A stretch of 64,000 nucleotides of DNA. Source: Hemiscyllium ocellatum (Eukaryota). A program made the translations under genes and the position numbers. Of the stretch, positions 862-35,203 are shown piece by piece; the stretch's first letter is position 1, and each line of letters opens with the position of its first letter. The stretch is taken from contig NC_083435.1 in the NCBI RefSeq assembly GCF_020745735.1, positions 6,417,201 to 6,481,200 of the forward strand. Direction: 5' to 3'. The notes under the pieces are model-generated. The model did no database searches and was not told the origin of the DNA. It saw only the letters and a list, made by a program, of their open reading frames with translations.

Positions 862-867
862 TTTATT
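862..867 (-). terminator. AATAAA overlapping the gene A stop codon (candidate poly(A) signal)
   Basis: The minus strand reads tcc aaa TAA ag, which contains AATAAA. Its use as a signal is not demonstrated. Confidence 0.35.
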
Positions 868-1440
868 TGGATGAAGCGATGAATCCCTCATCCTCCTGGA
901 TTGTTACTCTCCGGGGACAGATTTTCAGAGGTTCTGTGTTTTTATCCCCATCAATGAGATACGGACTGAAGAAAGGATAGAGTTTCTCAGTGAATGTCCC
1001 AGTGAAAGTGTAGATATGGCTCTTGTTCTCTGAGTTATAAAAGGACATCTTCCCTCCCTCATAATCCAGACAGACTCGGACCTTCCTCGGACTCACACTC
1101 AGCTTTAAGCATTTCCATGGTTTCTCACCAGCCCAGTATTTATTCCCCTCTCTCAGCGCCAATGCCCAGTATCCATTACCTGGATTCAGGTTGATTTGCC
1201 CCTTCCTGTGGATGGACTCCTTGGCCACACCCACATCCCACTCAGTCTTATTCCCCACCTCCACCTCCCAGGAATGTTTCCCTGATGTGAATCCCTCTGA
1301 TCCCAGGACACAGACACAGTAACCAAATCTCTCCGGATTGTCGGGAAGCTGCTGCCGATTCCCGGTGTGTCTCACGGTGCTCAGGTCCTCAGACAGGAGA
1401 AGGGCAGGATGGGCTGTATTAGGGTCCAAGGTGACTGGAG
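863..1440 (-). CDS. Gene A (TRIM35-like E3 ligase) exon 6: PRY/SPRY (B30.2) domain and stop
   Basis: Reads (A)[11 protein letters not shown]...NPERF...WEVEV...LDYEGG...LYPFFSP. Acceptor ttcccag| has an upstream tgactaac branch point. Phase 1 matches exon 5. TAA at 865-863. Confidence 0.95.
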
Positions 1441-1611
1441 CTGGGAACAGAGGGACACCAATAAAATGTTAGTCACACTCACTGTAACTCTCACAGCCGC
1501 TTAGTGACTGGGAACATCAGCAACGATCCAGGATTAGAAATTCATCCCCAGGGAAGGGGTTAAACAGCACTCGGGATAGACCCTGCAATGAGGCTGAGGA
1601 AACCCCGTTAC

Positions 1612-3088
1612 AGAGAGAGGGTGGGACCGAGAGAGAGAGAGAAAGACAGTGTGTCACAGAGAGAGAGAGAGGGGGAGAGAAAGGGAGAGGCAGTGTGTGA
1701 CAGAGAGAGAGAGAGAGAGACACTGTGTGTGACAGAGAGAAAGAGGGAGAGAGGATGTGTGTGACAGAGAGAGGGGAACTATGGGCTAAATACGGAGAAG
1801 GAGAGAGACGGTGAATTTGACAGAGAGATGCCGAGTGTGACAGAAACAGAGATGGAAAGAGATGGTATCTCTGACAGGGAGAGAGAGAGACGGTGAGTGT
1901 GACACAGAGAGAGAGAGAGTCACAGTCAGTGTGGCAGAGAGAGACACACAGTGTATGGTTTCAGGGAGAGAGAGATGGTGTGTGTATCACAGAGAGAGAG
2001 AATGTTGTGTGTGATGTAGACAGAGACAGTGAGTGTGATAGAGAGTGAGATGGCGAGAGTATCAGAGAGAGAAAGAGATGGTTTGTGTGACAGAGGGAGA
2101 GGCAGAGTGTTTGTGACAGACACACAGAGAGGCAGAGAGTGTGACAGAGAGAGAGAGAGAGAGATGGTGAGTGATAGAATGAGCAGGACTTTTCCACTTA
2201 ATGGTAAGGTTCTGGGGAGTGTTGCTGAACACAGAGACCTTGGAGTGCAGGTTCATAGCTCCTTGAAAGTAGAGTTGCAGGTAGATAGGATAGTGAAGAA
2301 GGTATTTGGTATGCTTTCCTTTATCAGAGCACTGAGTATCAGAGTTGGGAGGTCATATTGCGGCTGTTCAGGACATTGGTTAGACCACTTTTAGAATATT
2401 ATGTACAATTCTGGTCTCACTCCTATCGGAAGGATGTTGTGAAACTTGAATGGATGCAGAAAAGGTTTACAAGGATGTTGCCAGGTTGGAGGATTTGAGC
2501 TATAGGGAGAGGCTGAGTAGGCTGGGGCTATTATCCCTGGAGCATCGGAGGCTGAGGGGTGACTTTATACAGGTTTATTAAATCATGAGGGGCATGGATA
2601 GGGTTAAAGAGACAAAGTCTTTTCCCTGGGGTGGGGAACCTGAGGGGCAACCTTTTCATGCAGAAGGTGATGCATGTATGGAATGAGCTGCCAGAGGAAG
2701 TGGTGGAGGCTGGTACAATTACAACATTGAAAAGGCATATGGATGGGTATATGGTTAGGAAGGTTTTCAAGGGATATGGGCCAAGTGCTGGCAAATGGGA
2801 CTAGATTAGGTGAGGATAACTGCTCGGCATGGATGAGTTGGGCCGAAGGGTCTGTTTCTGTGCTGTACCTCTCTATGATTCTGTGAGTGAGCGAGAGAGA
2901 GAGAGAGAGAGAGACAGAGAGAGAGAGATGGTCCATTTGACAGAGAGAAAGGAAGAGAGAGACGGTGTCTGTGACAGAGTGAGAGACAGTGACTGCGATA
3001 GAGTGGGAGTGAGAAAGAGAGACAGAGACAGAGCGAGAGAGTGTGTGTCACAGAGAGAGTGAGTGTGAGAGAGAGAGAGATGTATGTG

Positions 3089-3119
<31 letters not shown>

Positions 3120-6100
3120 TGTATACGTGTGACAGAGATAGACAGTGAATGACGAAGTGACAGCGAGTGAGACAGTGATTGCGAGAAAAAGACGTGGTGT
3201 GTATGACAAAGAGACAGACGGAGAGAGAGAGAGAGAGACAGAGAGAGACAGAGAGAGAGAGAGAATGATTGCGACAGAGGGACAGAGATACAGGGAGAGA
3301 GAGTGAGAGAGGATGAGTGTGTGACAGAGCGAGAGTCACAGAGAGAGGGAGAGTAATGGTGAGTGTGACAGAGTCTCACAAAGTTGGTGTGTAAAAATAG
3401 TAAAATTGTAAATGAATTGAAAAGCAGAGTGTGGTCCCTTTCGGAGGAAAAGTGCTCTTTAAGCTTGGAGTTCAGCAGAGAAGGAGGTCTGTGTGCAGCT
3501 GTGGGAGACAGACTGTTCTAAAATGGAAACATGTTCCTGTTGGCTTTGTTCATGGGCACCTGAGGTTTGCTGCTGTTTTGACGACAAGTCGAATTTGACC
3601 AATTAATTTAAACCAAACACTCTGCCATTCAAAACCCACTGAATTTAAAAACTGATGGTGTTTACAGCCTGAAACCAATCACGTTGTGAGAATTTGGTGC
3701 ATCATCAGGAATATTGAAGGCAGGGTTTTTTTGAAAATTGAGAGAAGCCAAATGTCATAGAGAGACAAAGCTGACTTTGACACAATATGATGAAGCTCTC
3801 TAACAAGGACCCATCAAATGCACCATTTCCAGCTCCAAATCCTCACAGAAGAATCATCAAAAGAAAGGTGTTTGTGATGTGAGATCAGCAGAAGGAAGAT
3901 TGGAGACAGCGGAGAAGACATAGATTGTGTCATGTTGAGAGACTAAGTTTAATTTATTGCTCTTATAAATTGGATTTATATGTGGGAACTGTGTTAATGA
4001 AACATTCATTCCAGTAGAATTTAATTGAATTAAGGAACAGTGAGTAATTCTGTTCATTTGTTCATTGCTGATGTTAGATCAATACATTGTCAGTGTATAT
4101 GACAGAGAGAGAGATGGTGCATGGACAGAGAGAGAGCGAGAGAGAGAAAGTGACAGTGCGTGTGTAAATAGAGAGGATGTGTGTGACATAGAGAAAGAGA
4201 AAGAGATTGTGACAGACAGAGAGATGGTGCATGTGACAGAGACAGAAAGAGAGAGAAACATTGTGTTTTTAACATAAAGACAGATATAGACAGATGGCGT
4301 GTGTAACTGAGAGAGAGAGAGATGGTGTGTGTGACAGAGAGAGATATGGTCTGTGTGACTGAGAGACAGAGACAGAGGGTCACAGCAAGTGTGACAGAGA
4401 GAGAGGGGTTGTGTATGACAGAGAGAAAGAGAGAGAGAGAGAGAGGATGTGTGTTGAAACAGGGTGAGTGAGAAGGTTTGTGTAACTGAGAGAGAGAAGG
4501 AAAGAGAGACGGTGTATCTGACAGAGACAATGAGAAAGAGAGAGAATGAGACATTGTGTGTGACACAGAGATAGAGAGAGAGGGTGGTGGCAAGTGTGAC
4601 AGAGGGAGGTTGTGTATGACAGAGAGAAAGAGTGGGGCAGTGTGTGTGAAAGAGGGTAAAAAAGAGAAAGAGACGGTTTGTATGACAATGGGATGGACAG
4701 TGCATATGACAAAGAGAGAGAGAGAGAGAAACGGTGTGTGTGACAGAGGCAGAAATAGAGAGTGATGGTGGACATGACAGAGACAGAGATAGTGTGTGTG
4801 ACAGAGAGATAGAGAAAGAGAAAGAGAGAGATGGTGTGTGTTACAGAGAAACATAGACAGAGGGTCACAGCAAGTGTGACACAGAGAGAGAGGTTGTGTG
4901 TGACAGAGAGAGGGAGAGAGGACACGTGTTGAAAGAGGGTGAGAGAGAAGGTTTGTGTGACAGAGAGAGAGAAAGCAAGAGAGACGGTGTGTCTGACAGA
5001 AATGATGAGAGAGAGAGAGAAAGTGTGTGTGACACAGAGATAGAGAGAGAGAGGGCAATGGCATGTGTGACAGAGAGAGGTTATGTATGACAGAGAGAAA
5101 GAGAGAGAACAAGATGGTGTGCATAACAGAGACAGTGACAGTGTGTGTGACAGAGAGGAAGTGAGAGAGAGATAGTGCATGTGACAGGGAGAGAGAGAGA
5201 GAGAGAAAGAGATGGTGTGTGTGAAAGAGAGAATTAGAGAGTCAGAGATGGCAAGTATGATGAAAAGAGAGAGGTTATGTGTAACAGAGAGAGAGTGATA
5301 CGGTGTGTGTGACAGAGGGTGAGAGAGTGAGGCGGTGAGTGTGACAGAGGGTGAGAGAGTGAGGCGCTGTGTGTGACAGAGGGTGAGAGAGTGAGGCGGT
5401 GTGTGTGACAGAGGGTGAGAGAGTGAGGCGGTGTGTGTGACAGAGGGTGAGAGAGTGAGGCGGTGTGTGACAGAGGGTGAGAGAGTGAGGCGGTGTGTGT
5501 GACAGAGGGTGAGAGAGTGAGGCGGTGTGTGTGACAGAGGGTGAGGCGGTGTGTGTGACAGAGGGTGAGGGAGTGAGGCGGTGTGTGACAGTGGGTGAGA
5601 GAGTGAGGTGGTGAGTGTGACGGAGGGTGACAGAGTGAGGCAGTGTGTGAGACAGAGGGTGAGAGAGTGAGGTGTGTGTGACGGAAAGTGAGCGAGTGAA
5701 GCAATGAGTGTGACAGAGGGTGAGAGTGTGAGGCGGTGTGTGTAACGGGGATGATAGTGAGGCGGTGTGAGTGACAGAGGGTAAGAGAGAGAGGCAGTGT
5801 GTGAGCAACAGAAGGTGAGAGAATGAGGCACTGTGTGTGTGACAGAGGGGAGTGAGTGAGGCGGTGTGTGTGACAGAGGGTGGAGAGTGAGACGGTGTGT
5901 GTGAGATGGAGGGTGAGAGAGTGAGGCAGTGTGTGGGACAGAGGGTGAGAGAGTGAGGTGGTGAGTGTGAGATGGAGGGTGAGAGAGTGAGATGTAGTGT
6001 GTGACAGAGGGTGAGAGTGAGGTGGTGTGTGTGACAGGGTGAGAGAGTGAGGCGGTGAGTGTGACGGAGGGTGAGAGAGTGAGGTGGTGAGTGTGACAGA

Positions 6101-9100
6101 GGGTGAGAGAGTGTGGCGCTGTGTGTGACAGAGGGTGAGAGAGTGAGAAGGTGTGTGTGAGATGGAGGGTGAGAGAGTGAGGCGGTGTGTGTGACAGAGG
6201 GTGAGAGGGTGAGGCGGTGAGTGTGACAGAGGGTGAGAGAGTGAGGTGCTGTGTGTGACAGAGGTTGAGAGAGTGTGGCGCTGTGTGTGACGGAGGGTGA
6301 GAGTGTGAGGTGGTGAGTGTGACAGAGGGTGAAAGAGTGAGGTGGTGAGTGTGACGGAGGGTGAGAGAGTGTGGCGCTGTGTGTGACAGAGGGTGAGAGA
6401 GTGTGGCGGTGTGTGTGAGATGGACGGTGAGAGAGTGAGGCAGTGTGTGTGACAGAGGGTGAGAGAGTGAGGCGGTGAGTGTGACAGAGGGTGAGAGAGT
6501 GAGGCGCTGTGTGTGACAGAGGGTGAGAGAGTGAGGCGGTGTGTGAGACAGAGAGTAAGAGAGTGAAGTGGTGAGTGTGATGGAGGGTGAGAGAGTGAGG
6601 TGGTGAGTGTGACAGAGGGTGAGAGAGTGAGATGGAGTGTGTGACAGAGGGTGAGAGTGAGGTGGTGTGTGTGACAGAGGGTGAGAGTGAGGTGGTGTGA
6701 GTGACAGAGCGTGAGAGAGTGAGGCGGTGTGTGTGACAGAGGGTGAGAGAGTGAGGCGGTGTGTGTGACAGAGGGTAAGAGAGTGAAGTGGTGAGTGTGA
6801 TGGAGGGTGAGAGAGTGAGGCGGTGAGTGTGACTGAGGGTGAGAGAGTGTGGCAGTGTGTGAGACAAAGGGTGAGAGAGTGAGATGGAGTGTGTGACAGA
6901 GGGTGAGAGTGAGGTGGTGTGTGTGACAGAGGGTGAGAGAGTGAGACGGTGTGTATGACAGAGGGTGAGAGAGTGAGACGGTGTGTGTGAGATGGAGGGT
7001 GACAGAGTGGGGCAGTGTGTGTGACAGAGGGTGAGACAGTGAGGCGGTGTGTGTGACAGAGGGTGAGAGAGTGAGGCAGTGTGTGAGAGAGGGTGAGAGA
7101 GTGAGGTGTGTGTGACAGAGGATAAGAGAGTAAGGTGTGTATGTGACGGAGAGTAAGCGAGTGAAGCAATGAGTGTGACAGAGGGTGAGAGTGTGCGGTG
7201 GTGTGTGGGGACAGTGGGTGAGAGAGTGAGGTGGTGTGTGTAACAGGGGGTGATAGTGAGGCGGTGTGAGTGACAGAGGGTAAGAGAGAGAGGCAATGTG
7301 TGAGCAACAGAGGGTGAGAGAATGAGGCGGTGTGTGTGTGACAGAGGGTGAGAGAGTGAGGTGGTGTGTGTGACACGAGGGTGAGAGAGTGAGGCGGTGT
7401 GAGTGACAGACAGAGAGTGAGGCGGTGTGTGACAGAGGGTGAGACAGTGAGGTGATTAGTGTGACAGAAGGTGAGAGAGTGAGGCGGTGGGTGTGAGATG
7501 GAGGGTGAGAGAGTGAGGCAGTATGTGTGACAGAGGGCGAGAGAGTGAGGCGGTGTGAGTGACAGACAGAGAGTGAGGCGGTGTGTGACAGAGGGTGAGA
7601 GAGTGAGGTGGTGTGTGTGACAGAGGGTGAGAGAGTGAGATGGTGTGTGTGAGATGGAGGGTGAGACAGTGAGGTGATTAGTGTGACAGAGGGTGAGAGA
7701 GTGAGGCGGTGAGTGTGACAGAGGGTGAGAGAGTGAGGTGGTTTGTGTGACAGAGGGTGAGAGTGAGGTGGTGTGTGTGACAGAGGGTGAGAGTGAGGTG
7801 GTTTGTGTGACAGAGGGTGAGAGTGAGGTGGTGTGAGTGACAGAGGGCGAAAAAGCGAAAGAGACAGTTTATGTGACAGAGAGAGGGATAGTGTATGTGA
7901 CAGAGAGAGAGAGCAGAACAAGATGGTGTGCATAACAGAGACAGTGAAGGTGTGTGTGACAGAGAGAAAGAGAGAGAGTGGTAGTGCATGAGACAGGGAG
8001 GGAGAGAGATGGTGTGTGTGACAGAGAAAAATAGATAGAGTCAGAGATGGCAAGTATGACGAAAAGAGAGATGTTATGTGTAACAGAGTGAGAGTGAGGT
8101 GGTGTGTGTGACAGAGGGTGAGAGAGTGAGGTGGTTTGTGTGACAGAGGGTGAGAGAGTGAGGTGGTGTGTGTGACAGAGGCTGAAAGAGTGAGGCGGTG
8201 TGTGAGTGACAGAGGGTGAGAGAGTGAGGTGGTGTGTGTGACAGAGGGTGAGAGAGTGAGGTGGTGTGTGTGACAGAGGCTGAAAGAGTGAGGCGGTGTG
8301 TGAGTGACAGAGGGTGAGAGAGTGAGGTGGTGTGTGTGACAGTGGCTGAGAGAGTGAGGTGGTGTGTGTGACAGAGGCTGAAAGAGTGAGGCGGTGTGTG
8401 AGTGACAGAGGGTGAGAGAGTGAGGTGGTGTGTGTGACAGAGGGTGAGAGAGTGAGGTGGTGTGTGTGACAGTGGCTGAGAGAGTGAGGTGGTGTGTGTG
8501 ACAGTATCTGAGAGAGTGAGGTGGTGTATGTGACAGAGGCTGAGAGAGTGAGGCGGTGTGTGAGTGACAGAGGTGAGAGAGTGAGGCGGTGTGTGTGAAA
8601 GAGGGTGAGAGAGTGAGGCGCTGTGTGTGACAGAGGGTGAGAGAGTGAGGTAGTGTGTGTGACAGGGTGATAGAGTGAGGCAGTGTGTGTGACAGAGGGT
8701 GAGAGAGTGAGGTGGTGTGTGTGACAGAGGGTGAGAGTGAGGTGGTGTGAGTGACAGAGCGTGAGAGAGTAAGGCGGTGTGTGTGACAGAGGGTGAGAGA
8801 GTGAGGCGGTGTGTGTGACAAAGGGTAAGAGAGTGAAGTGGTGAGTGTGACAGAGGGTGAGAGAGTGAGGTGGTGAGTGTGACAGAGGGTGAGAGAGTGA
8901 GGCAGTGTGTGTGAGAGAGGGTGAGAGAGTGAGGCGGTGTGTGAGACAGAGGGTGAGAGAGTGAGATGGAGTGTGTGACAGAGGGTGAGAGTGAGGTGGT
9001 GTGTGTGACAGGGTGAGAGAGTGAGGCGGTGAGTGTGACGGAGAGTGAGAGAGTGAGGCAGTGTGTGTGACAGAGGGTGAGAGAGTGAGATGGAGTGTGT

Positions 9101-10798
9101 GACAGAGGGTGAGAGTGAGGTGGTGTGTGTGAAAGGGTGAGAGAGTGAGGCGGTGTGTGACAGGCGGTGAGAGAGTGAGACGGTGTGTATGACAGAAGGT
9201 GAGAGAGTGAGACGGTGTGTGTGAGATGGAGGGTGACAGAGTGAGGCAGTGTGTGTGACAGAGGATGAGAGAGTGAGGTGGTGTGTGTGAGATGGAGGGT
9301 GAGTGAGTGAGGCAGTGTGCGTGACAGAGGGTGAGAGAGTGAGGCAGTGCGTGTGAGAGAGTGAGGTGTGTGTGACGGAGGATAAGAGAGTAAGGTGTGT
9401 GTGTGACGGAGAGTAAGCGAGTGAAGCAATTAGTGTGACAGAGGGTGAGAGTGTGCAGCGGTGTGTGGGGACAGTGGGTGAGAGAGTGAGGTGGTGTGTG
9501 TAACAGGGGGTGATAGTGAGGTGGTGTGAGTGACAGAGGGTAAGAGAGAGAGGCAATGTGTGAGCAACAGAGGGTGAGAGAATGAGGCGGTGTGTGTGTG
9601 TGACAGAGGGTGAGAGAGTGAGGCGGTGAGTGTGACAGAGGGTGTGAGAGAGAGGTGGTGCGTGTGACGGAGGGTGAGAGTGAGGCAGTGTGTGTGACAG
9701 AGGGTGAGAGAGTGAGGTGGTTTGTGTGACAGGGTGAGAGTGTGAGGCGGTGTGTGTGATAGAAGGTGAGAGAGTCAGGTGGTGTGAGTGACAGAGGGTG
9801 AGAGTGAGGTGGTGTGTGTGACAGTGGCTGAGAGAGTGAGGTGGTGTGTGTGTGACAGAGGGTGAGAGAGTGAGATGGTGTGTGTGTGACAGAGGGTGAG
9901 AGAGTGAGATGGTGTGTGTAACCAAGGCAGGACAGACACTGTATGTGGCAGCGAAAGAGGAGAGAATTTGAGTGTGATCGAGACAGAAATAGAGAGAGAG
10001 AGAGTAAGAGACAGTGTTGTGACAGAGAGATAAAGGGATGGTGTGTAACGAAGAGAGAGAAAGAGAAAGAGGGAGGTGGCAACTATGACAGCGAGAGTGA
10101 AGTTTTGAATGACAGGGAGAGAGAGAGTGGGTCATTATGTGTGACAGAGGGTGAGAGACAGTTTCTCCATGAAGAGAGAGGTACAGTGGATGTGACAGAC
10201 CGTGAGTGTGACAGCGACAAAGAGAGATTGGTGCATGTGAAAGAGTGTGACAGTAAGTGAAGGAGGGAGATAGCAAGTGTGACAGAGGGAGAGAGAGGGG
10301 TGATGTTTTTGACAGAGAGAGAGAGAGAGAGAGAGAAAGAGACGGTGTGTATGACAAAGAGAGTGAGAGGAAACATTTGACAGAGCAAGAGATAGAGAGA
10401 TGTTGAGTGTGGCAGAGAGAGGGAAAGGGAGACACAGGGAGGGAGATAGTGAGTGTGATAGAGAGAGAGAGAGACAAAGAGAGAGGGTGTCTGTGATATA
10501 AACAGAGCTTAAGGAGTGTGTCAGAGTGAGAGTGAGAGAGAGACAGAGACACGGCAAGTCTGACAGAGAGGGAAAGAGAGAGAGAGTGTATGATGGAGAG
10601 AGAGAGAGATGGTTTATGAGAGAGGGACAGTGAGTGTGACAGAGAGAGATAGAGTGTGTGAGACAGTGTGTGATAGCGAGAGAGAGAGAGAGATGGATGT
10701 GTGTGAAAGGGAGAGACAGTTAGTATGAGAGAGAGAGAGAGAGAGATGGCAAGTGTGATGATAGAGAGAGAGATAAGTGGTGTGTCTGACAGAGGGGC

Positions 10799-10834
<36 letters not shown>

Positions 10835-11200
10835 TGCATGATAGAGTGAGAGAGAGAGAAAGAGATGGTTTATGTGACAGAGAGCTGGAGGGGGAGAGGG
10901 ATGATATGTTTGACAGTGGGAGATGCAATGAGTGCGACAGAGTGAGAGAGAGAGAGAGAGAGAGATAGTGACTGCAACAGAGTGAGAGAGAGAGAGGAAG
11001 ACAGTGAGTGTGAGACACAGAGAAAAAGATGGTATGTATCACAGAGAGAGATGGTATGTGTGATAGAGAGATGGTGAGTGTAACAGAGAGAGAGAGAGAG
11101 AGAGAGAGACAGTGTGTATTACAGCGAAAGAGAGAGACTGACAGTGCATGTGACAGGGAGAGACAGTGCTTATCATAGAGAGATCGAGAGAGACAGACAG
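1612..11200. repeat. Giant GA/GT-rich low-complexity array in gene A intron 5, with a core unit of about 30 bp (gagagagtgaggcggtgtgtgtgacagagggt) and higher-order blocks
   Basis: Continuous (GA)n/(GT)n-derived units, most regular at about 5300-9920. Interrupted by a CR1 fragment and a unique or LTR-like segment at about 3385-4090. Confidence 0.95.
2176..2882 (+). mobile_element. 5'-truncated CR1-type LINE fragment
   Basis: Encodes LNGKVLGSVAEHRDLGVQVHSSLKVELQVDRIVKK (CR1 ORF2 C-terminal motif), frameshifted. 3' tail ctctatgattct. Confidence 0.85.
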
Positions 11201-11813
11201 ACAGACATGGTCAGAAGGTCACACAATACCAGGTTATTGTCCAACAGGTTTATTTTGAATCCGAAGCTTTCGGAGTGCTGCCCCTTGACGAGGTGCAGAC
11301 TGAGACGGTGTGTGTGACAGAGAGAGGGACTTGCAGCCTGGCCCAGCTCTGGGAGCTGTCCACCCCAACAAGGCCTTTTATCTGGAAGCTGCAGCCACTG
11401 ACATCAGTTTAAGGGAAGTCCTTCTGTTGGAAACAAACAGTCACTTGTGACCATTAGCCTCTGACCATCGCAATCCAGTCTGACTGCTGTTAGACAGAAT
11501 AATCAAAGAAGGAACAGGATCTTATGCTGGAGTTTTGTGGAAGATGGATAAAGATAAACAGAATGTTGGGTCAATGATCCACAAAGGGAGGTTGAAGAAG
11601 CAATGTCCCTTCGCAGTACTAGGAGTGTCCAGCAGGTGGAGCGGGTCACTGTGACTCTGTGATCAGTCAATTCTGTATTTTCATAGAAAACTGACTGAAG
11701 TGAAATCTCACCAGTTACCAAGACAATTAAACATTTATTGTGAATACACAGCTCCCTTCTACTCATAAATATGAGAGTTGTTGAAGAGCTGGTGTCAGGA
11801 AGCTCACACCCAC

Positions 11814-11929
11814 CTGTATTAATCACCGTCAGCATCTTTTTCCACACTCTGTACTGCAGGGAGCCGATGTACTTGCCCACATTTATTAAAGGGTAAACCT
11901 TCTGTGGCTCTGGGAGAGTTTGCTTCACT
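11814..11929 (-). CDS. Gene A exon 5 (116 bp, L2 linker)
   Basis: Bounded by tttcag|A GTG AAG ... AAT ACA G|gtgggt. LINVGKYIGSLQYRVWKKML closely resembles the TRIM35 motif LIDVCKYLGSLQYRVWKKML as remembered. Confidence 0.93.
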
Positions 11930-12022
11930 CTGAAACAGGAGATAAAGGTCAGTGTTGGGTCATTCCAGGGTGGGAGAGGGATATGTTAGAAATAAAAATC
12001 AAATCGAGGATGTAAGCTTTAC

Positions 12023-12045
12023 CTTTTCTTTGTATCCGGAAATTT
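12023..12045 (-). CDS. Gene A exon 4 (23-bp micro-exon, KFPDTKK)
   Basis: Bounded by ccacag|AAATTTCCGGATACAAAGAAAAG|gtaaag. The 23-bp phase 0-2 exon is typical of class IV TRIMs and has counterparts in genes B and C. Confidence 0.88.
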
Positions 12046-12689
12046 CTGTGGAACAAAAACATTTTTACAGTTAGTGTTTCGAGAACATTTTATGACAAAA
12101 AGTAAAGTTCCAGACTGGATTCCCCAAAACATGAACATTTTAAGTTCAGGAAGTTATTAGGCAGTGTCTTCCTGTCCTCACTGGACTGAGTTCCTCCACA
12201 ATATTACAAATTACTGGATCTTACTGCACAGAACAACTCACAGAGATCCAACCCAATTGGAATATCTTCATGGATGTTAAATTGCTGGGATTAGTTTATT
12301 GGTTACAGAGTCACTTTAATGTTTACTTCCCTGTTATAATGTGTATGTGTACTGAAGACAAATGTTTCTGGGAATCCACACCAGGGTTGTCCAATAGAAT
12401 TCACTGACCCTCCTGGAAAGAGGGTGAAGCTGCAATTTTAGTTTTATGTTCAGTACCAGGACTCATCAACTAGTCTCCGAATCTTTGTCTGCAGTCAGGC
12501 CACTCTGTGTAACCTGAAACCCTGAACCATACAGACTGAATTATAATGTCACGGACATTCACTGTGAGTCACTCTGAGCTCAATGACCAACCAGCTGAAT
12601 GGCAACTCCATTGTCAGAGGGACCAGGTTTCAGCTGAGCTGTTAAACTGAGGTTCCACACTCTCTCCCCATTGAATAGTGTCACTACAT

Positions 12690-13568
12690 ACTGAGGTTCT
12701 ACCTGTCCCCGGTGTTGGGAAGGATGGGCCTGGCCTCACTGCTGTGGAATGCTCCAAGTAGTTGGACTGTTCCCCATCACTGTCCGTCATGGAGACATTT
12801 ACAAAGAGAAACAGCTTTCACCACAATCCATCAGGAAGTGGTCAGTACATAACATCCTTGATACCCTGAGGGAAAAGGAGAGGCTGGATCCTGTCGTGGT
12901 GAGAGAGGGCACCTGTGAGATCCTTCATGTATACCCAGTCGGTCTGTGTCACCACATGCTGCCCTCGAAGTGGCTGCAGGGAGGAGAGACTGTCACACAT
13001 CTCCTTCTGGAAAGGGCCTTTGTAAAGGAAGGCTGGAGGAAGATGCAGTGGTTTGTGTCGAGGTCCATCCAGAGCAGCTCCATGATGCGGGACTCTGTGC
13101 TCTATGGTCTGTTCCCCGAGGGACACACCGAGACAAACAGTGACTGTGCCTGGAGGACCATCAACTCAGTGAAAGATGCTCTTTGGTCCTCCCAAAACTT
13201 GTTGGTCTTCCAAACAGAGAGTTGACCTTGACCGACTGTTGCAGACTGGGACATTCCAAGGCCCAGGACTACGTGCTGAGGGACACATTAAACCTTGGGG
13301 CAGCTGCCGCCCAGGCACAGTGGGGAAAGACCACTGTCTGAGGGCTTTCTATTGAAGTGAATCCGTTCAGTTATCAGTCCTTCCTGGTGCCTCAAATGGA
13401 TGTAAATCTAGTCTTGGACAAGTCACAACTGCCTTTGGTTTGTTTGGTGGATAGAGTCAAGCTCCAATGTTTGTTGTTTCTCCATATGTGACTGGACAGA
13501 ACCAATCTGCTTTACTGCCTGTGTATATAAAGGTAGCTTTATGAATAAAGTATATTTTTGAAATTAAA
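12690..13568 (+). mobile_element. Tx1/L1-clade non-LTR retrotransposon 3' fragment, inserted in a decayed Deu-type SINE
   Basis: Encodes GGETVTHLLLE(R)AF...WRTINSVKDALW...NLLVFQ, resembling the C-terminal zinc-knuckle region of Tx1 ORF2. Ends in aataaa plus an A/T-rich tail. Deu-like SINE halves lie at about 12600-12670 and 13580-13650. Confidence 0.65.
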
Positions 13569-13667
13569 ATAACAATGAACTGAGTAGATCCCAAGAGGAA
13601 CACTGGGGTTCTCCCTGTGTCCTGGTCAACATTTATCCCTCAGCCCACACTGGCACCGCAGACGGTG

Positions 13668-13862
13668 GTGTTGCCATAGTCTTTACCAGACCATAGGGCT
13701 GCTCCCTCATTGGGGAGAAATGACTGGTGGTGATTACCCTGCGGGTCATCATACCTCAGACAAGGGGAGAGGTTGGGAAGGAGGATCCTTCATGGTAACC
13801 TCAGACAGTGATGGGAATTGAACCCTTGCTGTTGGTATCACACTGCTTCACAAACCGCCCCC
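13668..13862 (-). mobile_element. tRNA-derived SINE
   Basis: B-box-like gggttcaattccc on the minus strand, in a short element. Confidence 0.5.
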
Positions 13863-14501
13863 TTCAGCATTTCAATACACAACAGAGAATTACCTACATT
13901 AAGTTCTCAGGGGCTCACTGAACACAGTGGAAATTACAGAAAATCATATTGATTCTGATATAAATGGTTGTCATGTGGGGACACACCCCTCCCATTGTCT
14001 GAACATTTCACTATTTAACTGCTGAGAGAAAGCTCGATCTGTCTGTGTATCTGAGCCTGTGGAGAGTTCTCTCTCCTGGACAGAACCATTCCTGTTCCAG
14101 CCAGGGACACTGTAAACATGTTACAGCCTGGCTGGTCCCTGCACTGTAGGTCCCAGAGTCTGATCAGCAGCTGGACTGGAAATGTACCCTCAGGGGAGAA
14201 TGGTCTGACCGTCCTGAGGGTTTCTCACTCCTTATGAAACTGATTTTCCTCATGGTTTCAGCCCATTACAATGTTCCCCTGTAATATTTCCCTGGAGTGG
14301 ACACACTCCAGATTGTGTCATTTCCATGTTAAAGACAGCAGTTCGTGCTCTTGGGTGTGAGACAGAGAAAACCCAATGTCCCAGGTCACTGGTGTGCTGT
14401 TACTCAGTGAGGTTTATACTCTACATTTTAAGGATAGAATCTGCAATTCATCAAGACAATCTCAAAGAAAAGAGGCAAAGGAAAGAAAAATAAATAGTTA
14501 C

Positions 14502-14735
14502 TGTTAAAAATGTGATGCTGTCCTGTTCCCTCAGCTCTTGTTCAATATCCTGAACAGTGACTGAAAGGGATGAGATTTCCTCTGTTATCTTTGCAATCCT
14601 CTCCTTCATCTCCTGACTGTGTTCCTCTTTTTCCAGTTTCAGATCTTCCAACACAATCCTCTCTTCCTCACGGAGAAACTGATGAAGTTTTTCAAATTCA
14701 GTTTTAATTTGTTTCTCTGTTTTTACGCCTTGGTC
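14502..14735 (-). CDS. Gene A exon 3 (234 bp, coiled coil)
   Basis: Bounded by caaag|GAC CAA GGC ... TTT TTA ACA|gtaact. Reads EFEKLHQFLREEE...QDSITFL. Confidence 0.93.
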
Positions 14736-14803
14736 CTTTGGGAAATAATAATCAGATTGAACAAAAACAAATGAAGAGTTTTAAAATGTTGTTCAGCCTG
14801 AGC

Positions 14804-15410
14804 AGTCATAGAGTCATAAAGATGTACAGCACAGAAACAGACCCTTCAGTGAGACCCATCCATGCTGACCAGATATGCAAATTAATCTCATCCCGTTTGC
14901 CAGCACTTGGCCCACATCCCTCCAAACCCTTCTGATTCATCCACCCATCCCCATGTCATTTAAATGTTATTCTTGTACCAGCCTCCACCACTTCCTCTGG
15001 CAGTTCTTTCCATACATGCACCACCCTCTTCACAGGTCCCTTTAAAATCTTTCTCATCTCACCTTAAACCTATGGCCTGCAGTTTCAGCCTTCATGACCC
15101 TAGAGAAAAGACCTGGGCTATTCATCCAATCTCTGCCCCTCATGATTTTATAAACTTCTACAAGGTCATGCCTCAGCCTCCAATGCTCCAGGGAAAACAG
15201 CCCCAGCCTATTCAGCCTCTCCCTTTAACTCAATTCCTCCAACCCTGGCAGCACCTTGTAAATCTTTTCTGAAGCCTTTCTCATTTCACAGCATCTTTCC
15301 TGCAGCAGGGAGACCAGAAATGAATTCCAGCAGTATTCCAGAAATGGTATAACTAATGTTCTGTACAGTCGCAACATGACCTCCTAGCTCCTGTACCCAA
15401 TGCACTGTTC
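14804..15410 (-). mobile_element. CR1-type LINE 3' fragment
   Basis: Reverse complement of the same tail and ORF2 end seen at 2176-2882. Confidence 0.8.
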
Positions 15411-15609
15411 ATGTCTGACTCATATCAGTAAATTATTAAAACTTTCCCAATCTGATCAAATCCATGATGTGGAGAAACATCTTCTCTGGATCCACATTTT
15501 CAAATCCTATTAGAATTTTTAAAAATTCTAACAGATTAGCCTCAGTCTTCTCTTTTCCAAAGAAATGACTCACAACCTGTTCAATCATTCCTAAAAGTGC
15601 TAAATTCTG

Positions 15610-15990
15610 ATAGAACATAGAACCATACAGCCAGTACAGACCCTTCGGCCCTCGATATTGCACCGACCTGTGAAACCAATCTGAAGCCCATCTAACCTAT
15701 ACTATTCCATTTTCATACATATGTGTATCCAATAATCATTTAAATGCCCTTAAAGTTGGCGAGTCTCCTACAGCTGTAGGCAGACCATTCCATGCCCCAA
15801 CTATTCTCTGAGTAAAGGAACAATTTCTGATATCTGTCCTATATTTATCACCCCTCACTTTAAAGTTATGTCTTCTTGTGCTAGCCATCACCGTCTGAGG
15901 AAAAAGGCCTCACCGTCCTGCCTATCTAACCCTCTGATTATCTTACATGTCTCAATTAAGTCACCTCTCAACCTTCTTCTCTCTCATGAA
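15610..15990 (-). mobile_element. CR1-type LINE 3' fragment (atagaac-tail subfamily)
   Basis: Has a tagaacatagaac tail and resembles the element at 24436-25035. Confidence 0.75.
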
Positions 15991-16110
15991 AATATCCAGG
16001 TTAGTTCATGCAATATCTATTTGTAATATGGAGACTGGAATTCTGCACAGTGCAATTCTGAATGGTTACAATTCTGTACAAAATATAGAACAAAGTAAGA
16101 TCATAAGTAC

Positions 16111-16206
16111 CTGAATGTGGGACAATGTTTTCTCATAATCACTTTTGACAGTTTCACATTCCTTCTTCTTCTCCTGAATTGGCTTCAGGGAGGTTTCCAG
16201 TTCCTC
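16111..16206 (-). CDS. Gene A exon 2 (96 bp, start of coiled coil)
   Basis: Bounded by gttcag|GAG GAA CTG ... CAC ATT CAG|gtactt. Reads EELETSLKPIQEKKKECETVKSDYEKTLSHIQ. Canonical 96-bp TRIM exon, absent from the ORF track. Confidence 0.92.
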
Positions 16207-20795: not shown

Positions 20796-21170
20796 CTTAA
20801 ACTCTTCAGCAGCTTCTTCCACTGGCAGCACCTCGTGGTTTTGATGACCTTTTGAAATCTGACAAACAAGACAGATGAGCTGATTATCAGTTTTACAGAA
20901 AATCTTCAGTTTCTCCTTGTGTCGGCTGCATTCCTGCAGAATTTCACCACCTCCACCGCTTTTTACAAATGATTCCACAATGTTGCAGAGAGTGCGGTGG
21001 GATCTCAGGGTCCTGGAGGAAGTCTCCTTTCTACAGACAGGACAGCAGGCAGTGTCAGCTTTCTCCCAGTACTGGGTCACACAGGATCGACAGAAGCTGT
21101 GATCACAGTCAAGTAAGACAGGATCTTTATACAGATCATGGCAAACAGCACAGGAAAGATCAGCTTCCAT
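20796..21170 (-). CDS. Gene A exon 1: RING (C3HC4) and B-box2
   Basis: Reads MEADLSCAVC...CDHSFCRSC...CPVC and CSRH...CKTD...CLVC...HQNH...EEFK|gtgagg. Kozak context acgATGG. Confidence 0.95.
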
Positions 21171-21232: not shown

Positions 21233-21251
21233 TACTTTCAGTTTCATTTCC
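21233..21251 (-). promoter_or_regulatory. ISRE/IRF-E element upstream of gene A
   Basis: The gene strand reads GGAAATGAAACTGAAAGTA, three GAAA half-sites including GAAANNGAAA, 63-81 bp before the ATG. Confidence 0.7.
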
Positions 21252-21835: not shown

Positions 21836-23068
21836 GTAAAAAATGAGGGCTGCAGATGCTGGAGATCACAGCTGAAAATGTGTTGCTGGTTAAAGCACAG
21901 CAGGCCAGGCAGCATCTCAGGAATAGGAAATTCGACGTTTCGGGCAAAAGCCCTTCATCAGGAATGAGGAGAGTCTGCCAAACAGGCTAAGATAAAAGGT
22001 AGGGAGGAGGGACTTGGGGGAGGGGCGATGGAGATGTGATAGGTGGAAGGAGGTCAAGGTGAGGGTGATAGGCTGGAGTGGGGTGGGGGCGGAGAGGTCA
22101 GGAAGAAGAGTGCAGGTTAGGAGGGCGGTGCTGAGTTGAGGGAACCGACTGAGACAAGGTGGGGGAAATGAGGAAACTGGAGAAATCTGAGTTCATTCCT
22201 TGTGGTTGGAGGGTTCCCAGGCGGAAGATGAGGCGCTCCTCCTCCAGTCGTCGTGTTGTTATGTTCTGCCGGTGGAGGAGTCCAAGGACCTGCATGTCCT
22301 CGGTGGAGTGGGAGGGAGAGTTAAAGTGTTGAGCCACGGGGTGGTTGGGTTGGTTGGTCCGGGCGTCCCAGAGGTGTTCTCTGAAGCGTTCCGCAAGTAG
22401 ACGGCCCGTCTCCCCAATATAGAGGAGGCCACATTGGGTGCAGCGAATGCAATAGATGATGTGTGTGGAGGTACAGGTGAACTTGTGGCGGATATGGAAG
22501 GATCCCTTGGGGCCTTGGAGGGAAGTGAGGGAGGAGGTGTGGGCGTATGTTTTACATTTCCTGCGGTTGCAGGGGAAGGTGCCGGGAGTGGAGGTTGGGT
22601 TGGTGGGGGGTGTGGACCTGACGAGGGAGTCACGAAGGGAGTGGTCTTTGCGGAACGCTGATAGGGGAGGGGAGGGAAATATATCCCTGGTGGTGGGGTC
22701 CGTTTGGAGGTTGCGGAAATGACGGCGGATGATACGATGTATACGGAGGTTGGTGGGGTGGTAGGTGAGAACCAGTGGGGTTCTGTCTTGGTGGCGGTTG
22801 GAGGAGCGGGGCTCAAGGGCGGAGGAGCGGGAAGTGGAGGACATGCGGTGGAGGGCATCGTCGATCACTTCTGGGGGGAATCTGCGGTCCTTGAAGAAGG
22901 AGGCCATCTGGGCTGTGCGGTGTTGGAACTGGTCCTCCTGGGAGCAGATGCGGCGGAGACAAAGGAATTGGGAATATGGGATGGAGTTTTTACAGGGGGC
23001 AGGGTGGGAGGAGGTGCAGTCCAGGTAGCTGTGGGAGTCAGTCAGTTTATAGTAGATGTCTGTGTTGA
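21836..23068 (-). mobile_element. Penelope-like retroelement, 3' part (GIY-YIG endonuclease and terminal repeat)
   Basis: ORF 22098-22907 reads IIYCIRCTQCGLLYIGETGR...RFREH...PVAQHFN...LGTLQPQGMN. Confidence 0.9.
21930..21965 (-). ncRNA. Minimal type I hammerhead ribozyme-like motif (family 1)
   Basis: AUUC-CUGAUGA-A-GGGC-UUUU-GCCC-GAAA-CG-UC-GAAU. Core boxes present, with paired stems I and II. Confidence 0.65.
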
Positions 23069-24155
23069 GGGAGATGGAGATGTGATAGGTGGAAGGAGGT
23101 CAAGGTGAGGGTGATAGGCCGGAGTGGGGTGAGAGCGGAGAGGTCAGGAAGAAGATTGCAGGTTAGGAAGGCGGTGCTGAGTTCGAGGGATTCAACTGAG
23201 ACAAGGTGGGGGGAGGGGAAATGAGGAAACTGGAGAAATCTGAGTTCATCCCTTGTGGTTGGAGGGTTCCTAGGTGGAAGATGAGGCGCTCTTCCTCCAA
23301 CTGTCGTGTTGTTATGGTCTGGCGATTGAGGAGTCCAAGGACCTGCATGTCCTTGTTGGAGTGGGAGGGAGAGTTAAAGTGTTGAGCCACGGGGTGGTTG
23401 GGTTGGTTGGTCCTGGTGTTCCAGAGGTATTCTCTAAGACGTTCCGCAAGTAGGCGGCCTGTCTCCCCAGTATAGAGGAGGCCACATCGGGTGCAGCGGA
23501 TGCAATAGATGATGTGTGTGGAGGTGCAGGTGAATTTGTGGCGGATATGGAAGGATCCCTTGGGGCCTTTGAGAGAAGTAAAGGAGGAGGTGTGGGTGCA
23601 AGTTTTGCATTTCTTGCGGTTGCAGGGGAAGGTGCCGGGAGTGGCGGTTGAGTTGGTGGGACCTGACGAGGGAGTCACAGAGGGAGTGGTCTTTTCGGAA
23701 CGCTGATAGGGGAGGGGAGGGAAATATATCCCTGGTGGTGGGGTCTGTTTGGAGTTGGCGGAAATGACAGCGGATGATACTCTGTATATGGAGTTTGGTT
23801 GGGTGGTAGGGAGAACCAGTGGGTTCTGTCCTGGTGGCAGTTGGAGGGATGGGGCTCAAGGGCGGAGGAGCGGGAAGTGGTGGAGATACAGCGGAGGGCA
23901 TCGTCGATCACGTTTGGGGAGAATCTGCGGTCCTTGAAGAAGGAGGCCATCTGGGCTGTGCCGTATTGGAATTGGTCCTCCTGGGAGCAGATGCGGCAGA
24001 GACGAAGGAATTGGGAATATGGGATGGCGTTTTTACAGGAGGCAGGGTGGGAGGAGGTGTAGTCTAGGTAGCTGTGGGAGTCAGTCGGTTTATAGTACCC
24101 GACCTCAAATTCACCTGGAACGTCTCAGACTCCTCCCTCCCATGCCTAGACCTCA
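23069..24155 (-). mobile_element. Second tandem Penelope-like copy (frameshifted), followed by a short inverted RT fragment
   Basis: ORFs 23163-23678 and 23675-23950 repeat the GIY-YIG region. About 24097-24154 on the plus strand reads PDLKFTWNVSDSSLPCLDL, resembling Penelope RT. Confidence 0.85.
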
Positions 24156-30330: not shown

Positions 30331-31145
30331 AGAGCCTCCTCTCTGTCTGTGCTAATTTCTGTAAGAACACTGCAAGCCTTCTCCCTTTTTTTGATACCCA
30401 CATTATTCCTCTCACTCGTGAACACTGACACCAAGTATTCATTTGGAACCACATGGGCATCCTCCACTCACAAATTATTGCTGTGATACTTAATGGACCC
30501 TACTCTTTACCGAGTTATCCTTTTATCCTTAATGTCTGTGTGAAACAGTTTTGTATTTGCCTTTATTTTACCTGTCACTGTCCCTTCATTTCCTCTTTTA
30601 GTTCTCTTTATTTTGAGTTCTCTTTGGTCCATTCTATAATCCTCTCAGGCTGTTGCTGTTGTTTCTCAGTTAATCCTTTCTTCAAACAAAATGTACTTTT
30701 TTAAAAATCACAAACCAATCAAATCCCCACCTCCTTGATGTACTGATTTACTTTCCCCACTCAGCAGTCCCCTGAAGCTGTCATTGTTAAACCTTCTCTT
30801 CTCTCTCAAATCGAGTGAGTTGCTGGTTTGCCTCAGTTTGAATTTTCTGACTTTTGTCCCTCCAGTGTCTTCTGGCCCTTTCTGATATCAGTTTTTTTAA
30901 TGTTTTTTTTACACAATCATAGGAAAACATGCTCAGATCAGACAGAGCTAGCATCCCTCAGGGCAATTAATGAACCAGTCTGGTTTTTCCACAATCCATT
31001 TACATTATTCACTACTCCCTCCCTTTCTGGACTGTGTCTTACAATGTTGCTGTGGCAATCAGAGACAGGAACTTAAAAGAGTGTTTGACTTTCCAGTGGG
31101 GACCATTTCACTTGGTGCTCAGTGGAGCCAGAGCAATCCTTTGAG

Positions 31146-31328
31146 ATGGCCAACATATGGGAGAAGCTAAAAAGTGAACAACGGAAGGAGCTGTGCAGTG
31201 TCCACAAGGAGAAGGTGAAGCTATTTTGTAAAACTGACAATCAGCCCATGTGTGTTGTTTGTCAAAGTTCAAAAAGCCACCAAAGCCATGAGCTGCTGCC
31301 TCTGGAAGAAGCGACTGAAGAATTTAAG
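31146..31328 (+). CDS. Gene B (RING-less TRIM35-like paralog) exon 1: B-box2 only
   Basis: Strong Kozak gagATGG at the position homologous to the gene A ATG. Reads MANIWEKLK...CSVH...CKTD...CVVC...HQSH...EEFK|gtgagg. In-frame TGA upstream at 31086-31088. Confidence 0.85.
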
Positions 31329-34300
31329 GTGAGGAGATATCTCATCAAATAGAGAAACAGAATGTAATTGTCATTGACTTGGATTGAGTGTCACTCAGTG
31401 CTAAAGGCAGTCCTGATAATGCATTTATATTTCTTTAGTTATTCTGTCACTCCATGGGCTGTCACTTGTATCATTGCTACAAGGAGCAAGGCCAGGGATG
31501 TTGATGAGTTAGACCGATGTCAGTCAATTAGCCCTCCAAATGCAAAGCCAAATCTCTTTTTACAGTATGTTTCAGATTAGAAGTCAGCACATACCTTTTA
31601 CCAAAGCTTCTCAATCAGTTCAAACTTTCACGCAATCAAATGCAATAACAGTGACCAGGAAACTGAACAGGTTCAATCCTCTGGCCATTTTCTGAGTTAA
31701 TAAGCAAACACCTTTGAAGTTTAACAAGGGAAAAGTGAGGCCATTGCTATCTGTATGAATGCACCATGGCCCAAATGAAAAAGATGTAACAAAACTCTTC
31801 CCATTTTAAAGAGGTGCAAGCTTCAAAACTCTAATCATTAAAAAAAAGGAAATTTACCAATTAATTAATAAAGTTGCCACGTCTGAAACTGAACACCATC
31901 AGATGAAGCAAAGAAGAGTGCAAAGATGTAAAAGGTGCAATAGTGTAAATAGTGCAAGGATGTACAAATGAAAGGGAAGGAAGTCAGACTGATTGTGAGG
32001 GGTGATGTATGTGGAGAGATTGAATCGATTAGGACTGTACTGATTGGAGTTTAGAAGGAGCTTTTAAATGAATTCTAAAATTCGAAAAGGATGACGCAAA
32101 GTAAACGCAGGAAGGATGTTCCCGATGACAGGGGAACCCAGAACCAGGGTCACCGTTTAAGGATATGGGATAAGCCATTTAGGACTGAGATAAGGAGAAA
32201 TTTCTTTTGCCAGAGAGTGGTGAACCACAGAAATTTTGAATATTTTGGTCAAAATTTTGAATACTTTCAAGAAGGACTTAGATACAGTTCACAGAGCTAA
32301 AGGTGTAGGAGAAAGTGGGAAATTATCAGCCATGATTGAATAACTGAACATACTCACAGCTGAAGGGCCAGTTTCTGTTCCTATGTCTTATGGTCTTACT
32401 GGATAAATAGCCTTCTATAAAACATTTAAAAAGAGATAACAGATAGAAGTAATGTTAAATGACTGAAGTAAAAAAATAACAGAGGAAAGAGACAACAGAA
32501 GAAATAGAAAAAGAAACAGCTGAGAATGCTTCCTGAAGGTGTGCAATTGTGAAATAGTGATAAAGGGGAAAAACAGGTCCAGTGGAGAGGTGCAGAGATA
32601 GGAAGATGTATCTGTTAGTCCAATGCTTAAACAGCATTCCTGAGCTTAGAGATATGGGAAATTGCAACGGATGAGAAGGTGACAAACCCTTCAAGGGTGA
32701 GTGAGTCAAACTGGATTCAATCAGTGATAAAACTAGATATCCTCCGACCCTAGGAAGGAATCTTCAGCACCTCTTATCGAGAGATGAATACAATCTGCAA
32801 CACATTTTCACCGAGGTACAGGAACTGAAGGAAGCCAATGAGATGGGAAGGCTGGGTGGAATGAGCTTGTTGGAAGAAACTAAGGGATTAAATCAATCGT
32901 CACAATTCCACAAGCAGTACTTTGATGAATTTGTTAATAAAACAATCTCATCAGCCTATGGCTATTGCTGTAACTTTAGAAATATTCAGGATATGAAAAT
33001 AAATCAGATTTTAAAGACAGACATTTTTGGCTCATCTCCCCCAATTCCTGGGTCCATGTTCAGATGACTGAGAGAAAAAAAACAACTTAATTCACTCAAG
33101 TAAAACAAAGAACTGCAGATGCTAGAGATCAGAAGCAAACAAAAGCTGAAATTGTTGGAGAATCTCAACAGGTCTGGCAGCATCTGTGGAGAGAGAAAGA
33201 GTTAATGTTTCGAATCCAGTGTAGTATTACTGAAACCTTAATTCTGTTTCACTCTCCGCAGATGCTGCCAGACCTGCTGACTTTTTATTCTTATTTCAGA
33301 TTTCCAATATCTGCAGTATTTTGTTTTTATTTAGGTTCCACCATTCATTAGACTTGTTCTGGAATGGAAGGACTGTCCTTTGAAGACAGTTTGGGAAAAC
33401 TGGGCCGAAGTTCTCTCGAGTTTTGAAGAATGAGAAGTGATCTCATCGATATTCACAAACTACTGAAAGAGATAGGAGGCTAAGATGACTCCCCTGTTGG
33501 GACAGCACAGAACCGGGGATCAGCTAACAATAAGGGGGAGGCCACTTCAATCCAACATAAGGAGAATTTTTATTTTTACTCAGAGGGTTGTGAGCCTTTG
33601 GAATTCTCTCCCGCAGGGAGCCGTGGAAGATCAGTCTTTGAGTGTGTTTAAAGTTGATATATTTCTGATTACTTGTGGTGGACAGGGTTATGGAATGGTG
33701 TGGTCAAAGGCATTGAAATGTTCGATTAGCCATGATTGTCTTAAAGGATGGGCTGAATGGCCTCTTCTGTTCTTACTTTCCTGAAAAGGTTTGGCTGGTC
33801 TCTCTAGTGCTTCAAGTCAATTTTAATGCAAATATGAAGTTGTTTTAATTTTGTTTATGTAATCACTCCTTTGAAATGGAAAGGAAATTAGGCGCGCTCC
33901 ACTTAAGGAAAGGACGAGGCCATTCAGCCCATCAAACATGTTATGTATTTGATGAGATCGTGGCCGACCTGGATCTCATCTCCACATATCAGACTTGATT
34001 CCTTCATATCTTTGCCCGAGAGAAAACTCAGTTTTGAAATTTTCATTGTCTGCAACCTACCGCCTTAACAATCTTTTCATGGGATGGTATCCAGACTTAC
34101 TCTGCTCTCTATGTGAAACACAGCTTCCTTCCTAAACAGTCTCACCCTCATTTTTAAGGTTAGGCCCTCTTCTCCAGATGTCAGAAACGAGCATTTCTCT
34201 CCATCTACCCTCTCTAAACCATGATCAACTTAAAGATTTCAGTTGGATCACAGCTTAATCTTCCATTGAAATGAAAGCTAAGAATTATTTTTACTGAATG

Positions 34301-34341: not shown

Positions 34342-34437
34342 GAGGAACTTCGAAGCTTACTGAAACCGGTCCAGGACAAGAAGAAAGAATGTGATGCTGT
34401 AAGAAACGACTATAAGAGGACGTTAAGCCACATTCAG
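34342..34437 (+). CDS. Gene B exon 2 (96 bp)
   Basis: Bounded by gaccag|GAG GAA CTT ... ATT CAG|gtactt. Reads EELRSLLKPVQDKKKECDAVRNDYKRTLSHIQ. Confidence 0.92.
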
Positions 34438-34969: not shown

Positions 34970-35203
34970 GATCAAGGTGTAAAGACAGAGAAACAGATTA
35001 AAGCTGAATTTGAAAAACTTCACCGGTTTCTCCGTGAGGAAGAGAGGATTGTGTTGAAAGATCTGAAACTAGAGAAAGAGGAAAAATGTCGGGAGATGAA
35101 GGAAAGGATTGAGGAGATTACAAAAGAAATCTCATCCCTTTCAGTCACTGTTCAGGATATTGAACAAGAGCTGAGGGAACAGGACAGCATTAAGTTCTTA
35201 ACG
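34970..35203 (+). CDS. Gene B exon 3 (234 bp, coiled coil)
   Basis: Bounded by tcaaag|GAT CAA GGT ... TTC TTA ACG|gtaaac. Confidence 0.93.

Follow-up and report, generated by a model that had tools for sequence, protein, structure and literature searches.

The question raised by this locus is how gene B, one of three class-IV TRIM genes (A, B and C) in a 64,000-nt stretch of the Hemiscyllium ocellatum (epaulette shark) genome (the window, which is free of N runs), came to lack an N-terminal RING domain, and what kind of gene it now is. Genes A (minus strand) and B (plus strand) lie head to head across a gap of 9,976 bp, share a six-exon structure and encode proteins that are 76% identical over 389 aa (Table 1). 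When joined, the six exons of gene A yield an intact 473-aa RING/B-box/coiled-coil/PRY-SPRY protein that is identical to RefSeq P0165. The six-exon model of gene B, in which all introns are GT-AG, has an open frame of 423 aa and is identical to RefSeq XP_060706610.1 ("zinc-binding protein A33-like isoform X1"). Gene B is already annotated in RefSeq, where it is modelled from the ATG at 31146, and the RefSeq gene spans and spacings of A and B match the window exactly. A second RefSeq isoform (X2), which uses the alternative last exon, is 221 aa in length and comprises the B-box and coiled coil only.

Table 1 Positions of the features of genes A and B within the 64,000-nt window
Feature	Position	Strand	Details
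Conserved region upstream of gene B (5'UTR or core promoter)	30965..31145	+	colinear with gene A upstream 21349-21171
Two in-frame stops upstream of the gene B ATG	31074..31088	+	TAA 31074, TGA 31086; from translation
Gene A exon 1	20796..21170	-	125 codons; RING + B-box2
Gene A exons 2-6	863..16206	-	16206-16111, 14735-14502, 12045-12023, 11929-11814, 1440-863
Gene B exon 1	31146..31328	+	61 codons: start codon, post-RING helix remnant (ANIWEKL), linker, complete B-box2
Gene B exon 2, coiled coil	34342..34437	+	96 nt, AG/GT
Gene B exon 3, coiled coil	34970..35203	+	234 nt, AG/GT
Gene B exon 4	40367..40389	+	23 nt
Gene B exon 5	40484..40599	+	116 nt; within ~225 bp tract near-identical to gene A
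Gene B last exon, PRY/SPRY (B30.2)	43981..44600	+	stop codon included; PRY E 6e-20, SPRY E 1e-20
Gene B alternative last exon, coding part (..AQAW stop)	42498..42511	+	RefSeq isoform X2

As counted in the initial annotation of this stretch, exon 1 runs from the ATG to a GT donor after 31328 in gene B and has 61 codons, versus 125 in gene A (21170-20796). Between homologous flanks, gene B (53 nt) is shorter than gene A (245 nt) by 192 nt, which corresponds to 64 codons, and the deletion junction falls directly after the gene B ATG, at 31148/31149. In an alignment of 15 N-termini, gene B lacks ancestral residues 2-61 plus 1 + 3 linker codons; codons 2-61 of gene A (21167-20988) have no counterpart in gene B. 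In the RING-bearing relatives, which include sawshark, rays and several sharks, the RING is followed directly by ..R-T-L-[A/S/C]-N-I-V-E-x-F-V-K-S.., and in the same alignment residues M1-A2-N3-I4-W5-E6 of gene B align on the ..T-L-[A/S/C]-N-I-V-E.. that directly follows the RING in every one of them. For example, sawshark (Pristiophorus) has L-ANIVETFVKS..DQNQQECSRHKEK, compared with M-ANIWEKLKS..EQRKELCSVHKEK in gene B. The earlier match of ANIWEKL in gene B to the post-RING CNIVESF of gene A agrees with the position in which the outgroup proteins place gene B. Searches by tblastn with gene A exon 1 and three other RING exons revealed no RING-coding sequence in the 10-kb gap between A and B or in the gene B introns. 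A 27% tblastn match that runs through the upstream region of gene B, considered as a relic RING, was rejected as a B-box match that had been extended. Because the sequence upstream of gene B is homologous to that upstream of gene A, and not to RING sequence, the loss is read as a deletion within an exon rather than as a missing exon. An internal deletion of about 60 codons had been proposed at the outset; residues 2-61 are gone, the upstream sequence is that of gene A, and no RING exon lies nearby. The alignments support the removal of codons 2-61 from inside exon 1, with the start codon kept.

The homology of the two upstream regions can be followed to the start codons themselves. By blastn, gene B 30965-31149 pairs with gene A 21349-21167 (67% over 186 nt, E 1e-8) and gene B 31203-31337 pairs with gene A 20921-20787 (84%). 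When the 300-nt segments that precede the two ATGs are aligned locally, the score is 58, compared with 10.9 ± 1.6 for 500 dinucleotide-preserving shuffles (z = 29), and the alignment stays colinear from −181 to −4, shifting by no more than 2 nt. By the same shuffle test, A and B show no homology in the first 300 nt of intron 1 (z = 0.7) and almost none at −301 to −600 (z = 2.5). Based on the colinear alignment and the blastn match, the start codons of A and B are positionally homologous, as had been claimed. The shared blocks quoted with that claim (aattaatgaacca, tttctgga, aatgttgctg, accattt.actt and aatcctt) are all found in both genes. The accompanying statement that 200-250 bp upstream of the gene B ATG aligns with gene A was correct as to the alignment and too generous as to its length, as solid homology covers ~180 bp; where a single in-frame stop had been reported upstream of gene B, there are in fact two. 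The gene B upstream region is ~95% conserved in Chiloscyllium punctatum.

At the DNA level, MAFFT left two placements for the first codons of gene B, either on the post-RING CNIVESF of gene A or on QYWEKA inside the RING. The latter, which sets IWEKL of gene B (TGGGAGAAG) on YWEKA of gene A (TGGGAGAAA), was rejected, as the outgroup ANIVE motif does not support it. The same alignment is what would speak for a RING lost in at least two steps or for an ATG that is not ancestral, with IWEKL derived from YWEKA or with the upstream similarity brought in by conversion from gene A, and A-B gene conversion appears to have occurred around exon 5. However, the outgroup post-RING ANIVE-x-F-VKS matches ANIWE-x-L-KS of gene B, and the upstream similarity of 67% is approximately that predicted from a dS of 0.49, compared with 99% in the putative conversion tract. 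In addition, the EQSFEM / EQPSEM context found right before the ATG recurs in the B models of Heterodontus and Scyliorhinus. A stepwise loss or a non-ancestral start codon is thus considered very unlikely.

Two additional features were observed in the upstream regions. The conserved block AATTAATGAACCA holds an upstream ATG in both genes (30970 in gene B; 21344, minus strand, in gene A; 5436 in C. punctatum contig L001), and the Scyliorhinus torazame model starts at this ATG (MNQVW). The uORF that begins there is conserved in neither length nor peptide (66 codons in gene B, 54 in gene A and 12 in C. punctatum), and that of gene B overlaps the main ATG out of frame. Upstream of gene A, an IRF-E/ISRE-like element, GAAACTGAAAG, is located at 21235-21245 (minus strand), 65-75 nt before the ATG. 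The homologous position in gene B (~31062-31078) reads GGAACTTAAAAGAG, which is degenerate, and is likewise degenerate in C. punctatum. The canonical ISRE (GAAANNGAAACT) has no match within the window, and a looser IRF-E pattern matches the upstream region of gene A, not that of gene B. The presence of an IRF-E-like element in gene A and its degenerate state in gene B hint that the two genes may be regulated differently.

A RING could also reach gene B from elsewhere, through an alternative or upstream RING/B-box exon spliced to exon 2 or to the acceptor-like site at 31096, in which case the RING-less form would be one isoform. Some database models have this appearance. In RefSeq P0162 (Rhincodon typus, whale shark) and P0160 (C. 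plagiosum), the B-type exons are preceded by a first exon that is not that of B and that encodes a RING and B-box, a 764-aa S. torazame model (P0340) runs from an upstream TRIM through the B upstream region, and an older C. punctatum model, flagged as partial, starts exactly at the equivalent of 31097. In contrast, P0162 extends over 247 kb, within which a TNF gene lies, as is typical of a chimeric prediction, and exons 2-3 of P0160 are also non-B. In the 31 kb of the window upstream of gene B, tblastn finds no plus-strand RING-coding sequence, and the sole upstream TRIM there, gene A, is on the other strand. In H. ocellatum, read-through is prevented by the two stops (31074 and 31086), and RefSeq lists only RING-less isoforms, all predicted models, for the B locus. 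A spliced-in RING exon, a scenario raised together with the initial annotation, therefore fails, as tblastn finds no such exon and the RefSeq model uses the ATG at 31146; acquisition of a RING by this route is considered improbable. P0162, P0160 and P0340 are probably annotation chimeras, which would hide the RING-less gene in those species; for R. typus and C. plagiosum, a RING-bearing transcript form is nonetheless conceivable on the basis of these models.

The missing RING could alternatively be an assembly or collapse artefact in the H. ocellatum genome, since the locus lies in a cluster of TRIM genes that includes near-identical paralogues, a setting in which assembly errors can arise. 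This scenario had also been raised at the outset, and it fails when compared with an independent assembly of C. punctatum: the older contig BEZZ01003013.1, which also carries gene B, has the same exon 1 (98.9% identical) and upstream region (together L001 5431-5795), and the protein models of three other genera have the same N-terminus. The chance of an artefact is accordingly negligible. Contig L001 is colinear with window positions 25926-48000 at ~93% identity, and the splice sites are the same.

This comparison also allows the selection acting on gene B to be assessed. Between H. ocellatum and C. punctatum, gene B has a dN of 0.012, a dS of 0.086 and a dN/dS of 0.14, with exons 4-5, which fall in an N gap of L001, left out of the comparison. 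Exons 1-3 (171 codons) contain 0 non-synonymous and 6 synonymous differences, and the gene B exons are 96-99% identical, versus ~93% for flanking non-coding DNA and introns. Between A and B, dN/dS is 0.31 at a dS of 0.49, which rules out neutral drift of either partner for long. These substitution patterns demonstrate that gene B is under purifying selection.

They also bear on the possibility that gene B is a duplicate in decay, a pseudogene so young that it has yet to gain stops. Its catalytic domain is gone, the B protein evolves faster than the A-type paralogues (Hemiscyllium versus Scyliorhinus identity of 73% for B-type and 81% for A-type), and B-type copies without the SPRY are present elsewhere on the chromosome. 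On the 49-Mb chromosome record that carries gene B, RefSeq lists several such proteins of 221-236 aa, which consist of no more than a B-box and coiled coil; up to and including exon 5 their identity is 99-100%, and the two loci looked up have different neighbours. Against decay, nothing interrupts the 423-codon frame at a dS of 0.49 from gene A, intact orthologues exist in four other species from three orders, dN/dS is low with no replacement in exons 1-3, and every splice site and B-box zinc ligand is kept. No stop, frameshift, broken splice site or neutral dN/dS was found for gene B, and the pseudogene reading is considered highly unlikely.

The RING-less N-terminus is common to C. punctatum, Scyliorhinus canicula (MSNFWEML..), S. 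torazame and Heterodontus francisci (..EQSFEM-INMWEMW..), and the C. punctatum orthologue (P0334) is likewise 423 aa in length and 97% identical to gene B. In a maximum-likelihood tree that covers 42 relatives and uses the alignment only from the start of the B-box, so that the RING columns are excluded, the B-type sequences form a single clade (support of 100/98). The order within this clade, Heterodontus, Scyliorhinus, whale shark and then Hemiscyllium + Chiloscyllium, is that of the species tree. A quick tree of the full alignment (44 rows, including two extra RING-degenerate relatives) agrees on the B clade. A single clade that tracks the species tree shows, at the level of gene phylogeny, that the RING deletion was one event that predates the divergence of the crown galeomorph orders, which probably separated roughly 200 million years ago. 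The B clade adjoins RING-bearing sawshark and ray genes (86/91), a position that is suggestive only and, if correct, would assign the loss to the stem of the galeomorphs. P0263 (Heptranchias perlo) and P0041 (S. torazame) belong to a separate lineage within the A33-like TRIM family, in which the RING is either degenerate, with Cys/His ligands lost, or absent together with a decayed B-box. The degeneration in this lineage implies that the RING was lost more than once among shark A33-like TRIMs. A literature search found no paper on the B lineage of sharks.

The domain content of gene B agrees with the above-described deletion. In a domain search, exon 1 of gene B matches zf-B_box only (E 1e-11, 45 bits versus a cut-off of 24) and none of the RING families, whereas the same search with gene A exon 1 returns the B-box and about ten RING families. 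The B-box2 zinc ligands of gene B follow the pattern C-x2-H-x7-C-x7-C-x2-C-x5-H-x2-H, and C17, H20, C28, D31, C36, C39, H45 and H48 are conserved across 36 relatives; the B-box earlier described as intact thus has its full zinc-ligand set. At the C-terminus, PRY (71 bits) and SPRY (74 bits) are, like the B-box, above the Pfam cut-offs, and Pfam TRIM_CC on exon 3 alone is below its cut-off. An AlphaFold model of B, prepared from a 36-sequence alignment (mean pLDDT of 65), predicts a short N-terminal helix at residues 2-9, which would be the remnant of the post-RING helix, a B-box with a pLDDT of ~84, one continuous helix at residues 53-180 (pLDDT of 79-92) and a C-terminal beta sandwich. The best PDB matches of this model are TRIM72 B-box/CC/PRY-SPRY, TRIM20 CC-B30.2 and TRIM21 PRYSPRY; the model aligns with TRIM72 residues 85-469 and with the TRIM21 PRYSPRY at a TM of 0.8 and an rmsd of 2.8. 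Of the class-IV TRIM/RBCC architecture, gene B has the B-box2, the long coiled coil and the PRY/SPRY, and lacks the N-terminal RING.

This architecture is of a known kind, that of a RING-less TRIM of the TRIM14 type. Mammalian TRIM14, also of class IV, has the same order of B-box, coiled coil and PRY/SPRY with no RING; it is without E3 activity and serves as an adaptor for MAVS and cGAS (PMC7578260). The two are probably not orthologues: all of the nearest matches of gene B are shark "zinc-binding protein A33-like" or bony-fish TRIM35-like proteins, which makes orthology with TRIM14 unlikely. The RING loss of gene B is an independent, shark-specific event with a mapped breakpoint, and its function is assigned by analogy. 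The nearest named bony-fish matches are TRIM35-like or "trim35-12" proteins, at 45-48% identity (a comparison of names and identity only). Like the fish TRIM35/hltr family, the shark genes are clustered, duplicated class-IV TRIMs with variable B30.2 loops (PMC3137616). That family is described as RING-bearing, in contrast to the B lineage. TRIM16, TRIM20/pyrin, TRIM29, TRIM44 and TRIML2 similarly combine a B-box and/or coiled coil with a C-terminal domain, with the RING lost or never present, and act as innate-immunity scaffolds (PMC7578260, PMC8720877, PMC6993854). These proteins belong to other subfamilies and have other N-terminal histories from that of gene B; in pyrin, for example, a PYD stands where the RING would be. 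Relative to gene B, gene A keeps 60 RING codons, and the variable loops of the PRY/SPRY differ between the two.

Taken together, gene B is proposed, with a probability of roughly 0.8, to be a functional class-IV TRIM gene whose RING was lost long ago. In a shark on the galeomorph stem, a single in-frame genomic deletion removed exon 1 codons 2-61 from one copy of an "A33-like/TRIM35-like" gene, and with them the entire RING finger together with the flank on its N-terminal side. What stayed in place was the promoter/5'UTR, start codon and post-RING helix remnant, followed by the B-box2, coiled coil and PRY/SPRY; purifying selection then preserved the shortened gene in at least three shark orders. 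Of these steps, the deletion and its single origin, the intact frame and splice sites and the purifying selection are shown by the data described above. This evolutionary account, considered as a whole, is held with high confidence. At the level of the protein, B is expected to dimerise via its long antiparallel coiled coil, to bind a ligand via the PRY/SPRY and to have no RING E3 ligase activity of its own. By analogy with mammalian TRIM14, it may be a non-catalytic adaptor or sensor; alternatively, B may be a modulator that enters a common assembly with RING-bearing paralogues, its neighbour A among them, and thereby alters how many RINGs the assembly contains. Any particular biochemical role drawn from such analogies is tentative, and somewhat doubtful.

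A ~225 bp tract that covers exon 5 and both flanking intron ends is near-identical in A and B (1 mismatch; 40441-40665, plus strand, versus 11972-11748, minus strand). In exons 4-5, the dS between A and B is 0.03, compared with ~0.5 elsewhere. From the nucleotide comparison, this tract looks like the product of gene conversion, or else of extreme constraint on the exon that links the coiled coil to the SPRY. A more elaborate and rather unlikely possibility is that A and B form a conserved two-component unit that dates from before the galeomorph divergence. In such a unit, B would heterodimerise with A-type proteins through the coiled coil and linker and act as a decoy, sensor or rheostat of the ligase, with the PRY/SPRY loops of B diverged and the exon 5 linker kept near-identical by conversion.

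RING-less TRIMs such as TRIM14 indicate that the sensing and scaffolding parts of these proteins can work without ligase activity. The B locus adds an independent, precisely mapped example from cartilaginous fish, with one breakpoint and with the start codon and promoter retained, and could serve as a natural control for the roles of the B-box, coiled coil and PRY/SPRY in the absence of a RING. It should also be of use in the annotation of shark TRIM clusters, where predictors sometimes graft a foreign RING exon onto B. As an ordinary case of domain loss, it leaves the understanding of TRIM evolution unchanged.

Finally, several other features of the window were observed. Between A and B, two tandem fragments of a Penelope-like retroelement are present at 22098-23901 (minus strand) and include a GIY-YIG endonuclease motif (..IYCIRCTQCGLLYIGETGR..). 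The last intron of gene A contains, at window positions 4000-11000, ~6 kb of a strand-skewed simple repeat with a GC skew of up to 0.8; the repeat resembles Ser/Leu/His/Thr-coding sequence and yields a spurious 1772-aa minus-strand ORF. The third class-IV TRIM, gene C (53645-62483, plus strand, with a start near 53645; 508 aa in RefSeq), differs in the subtype of its RING/B-box exon 1, which is 31% identical to that of gene A and 47-50% identical to exon 1 of P0016 and P0160.
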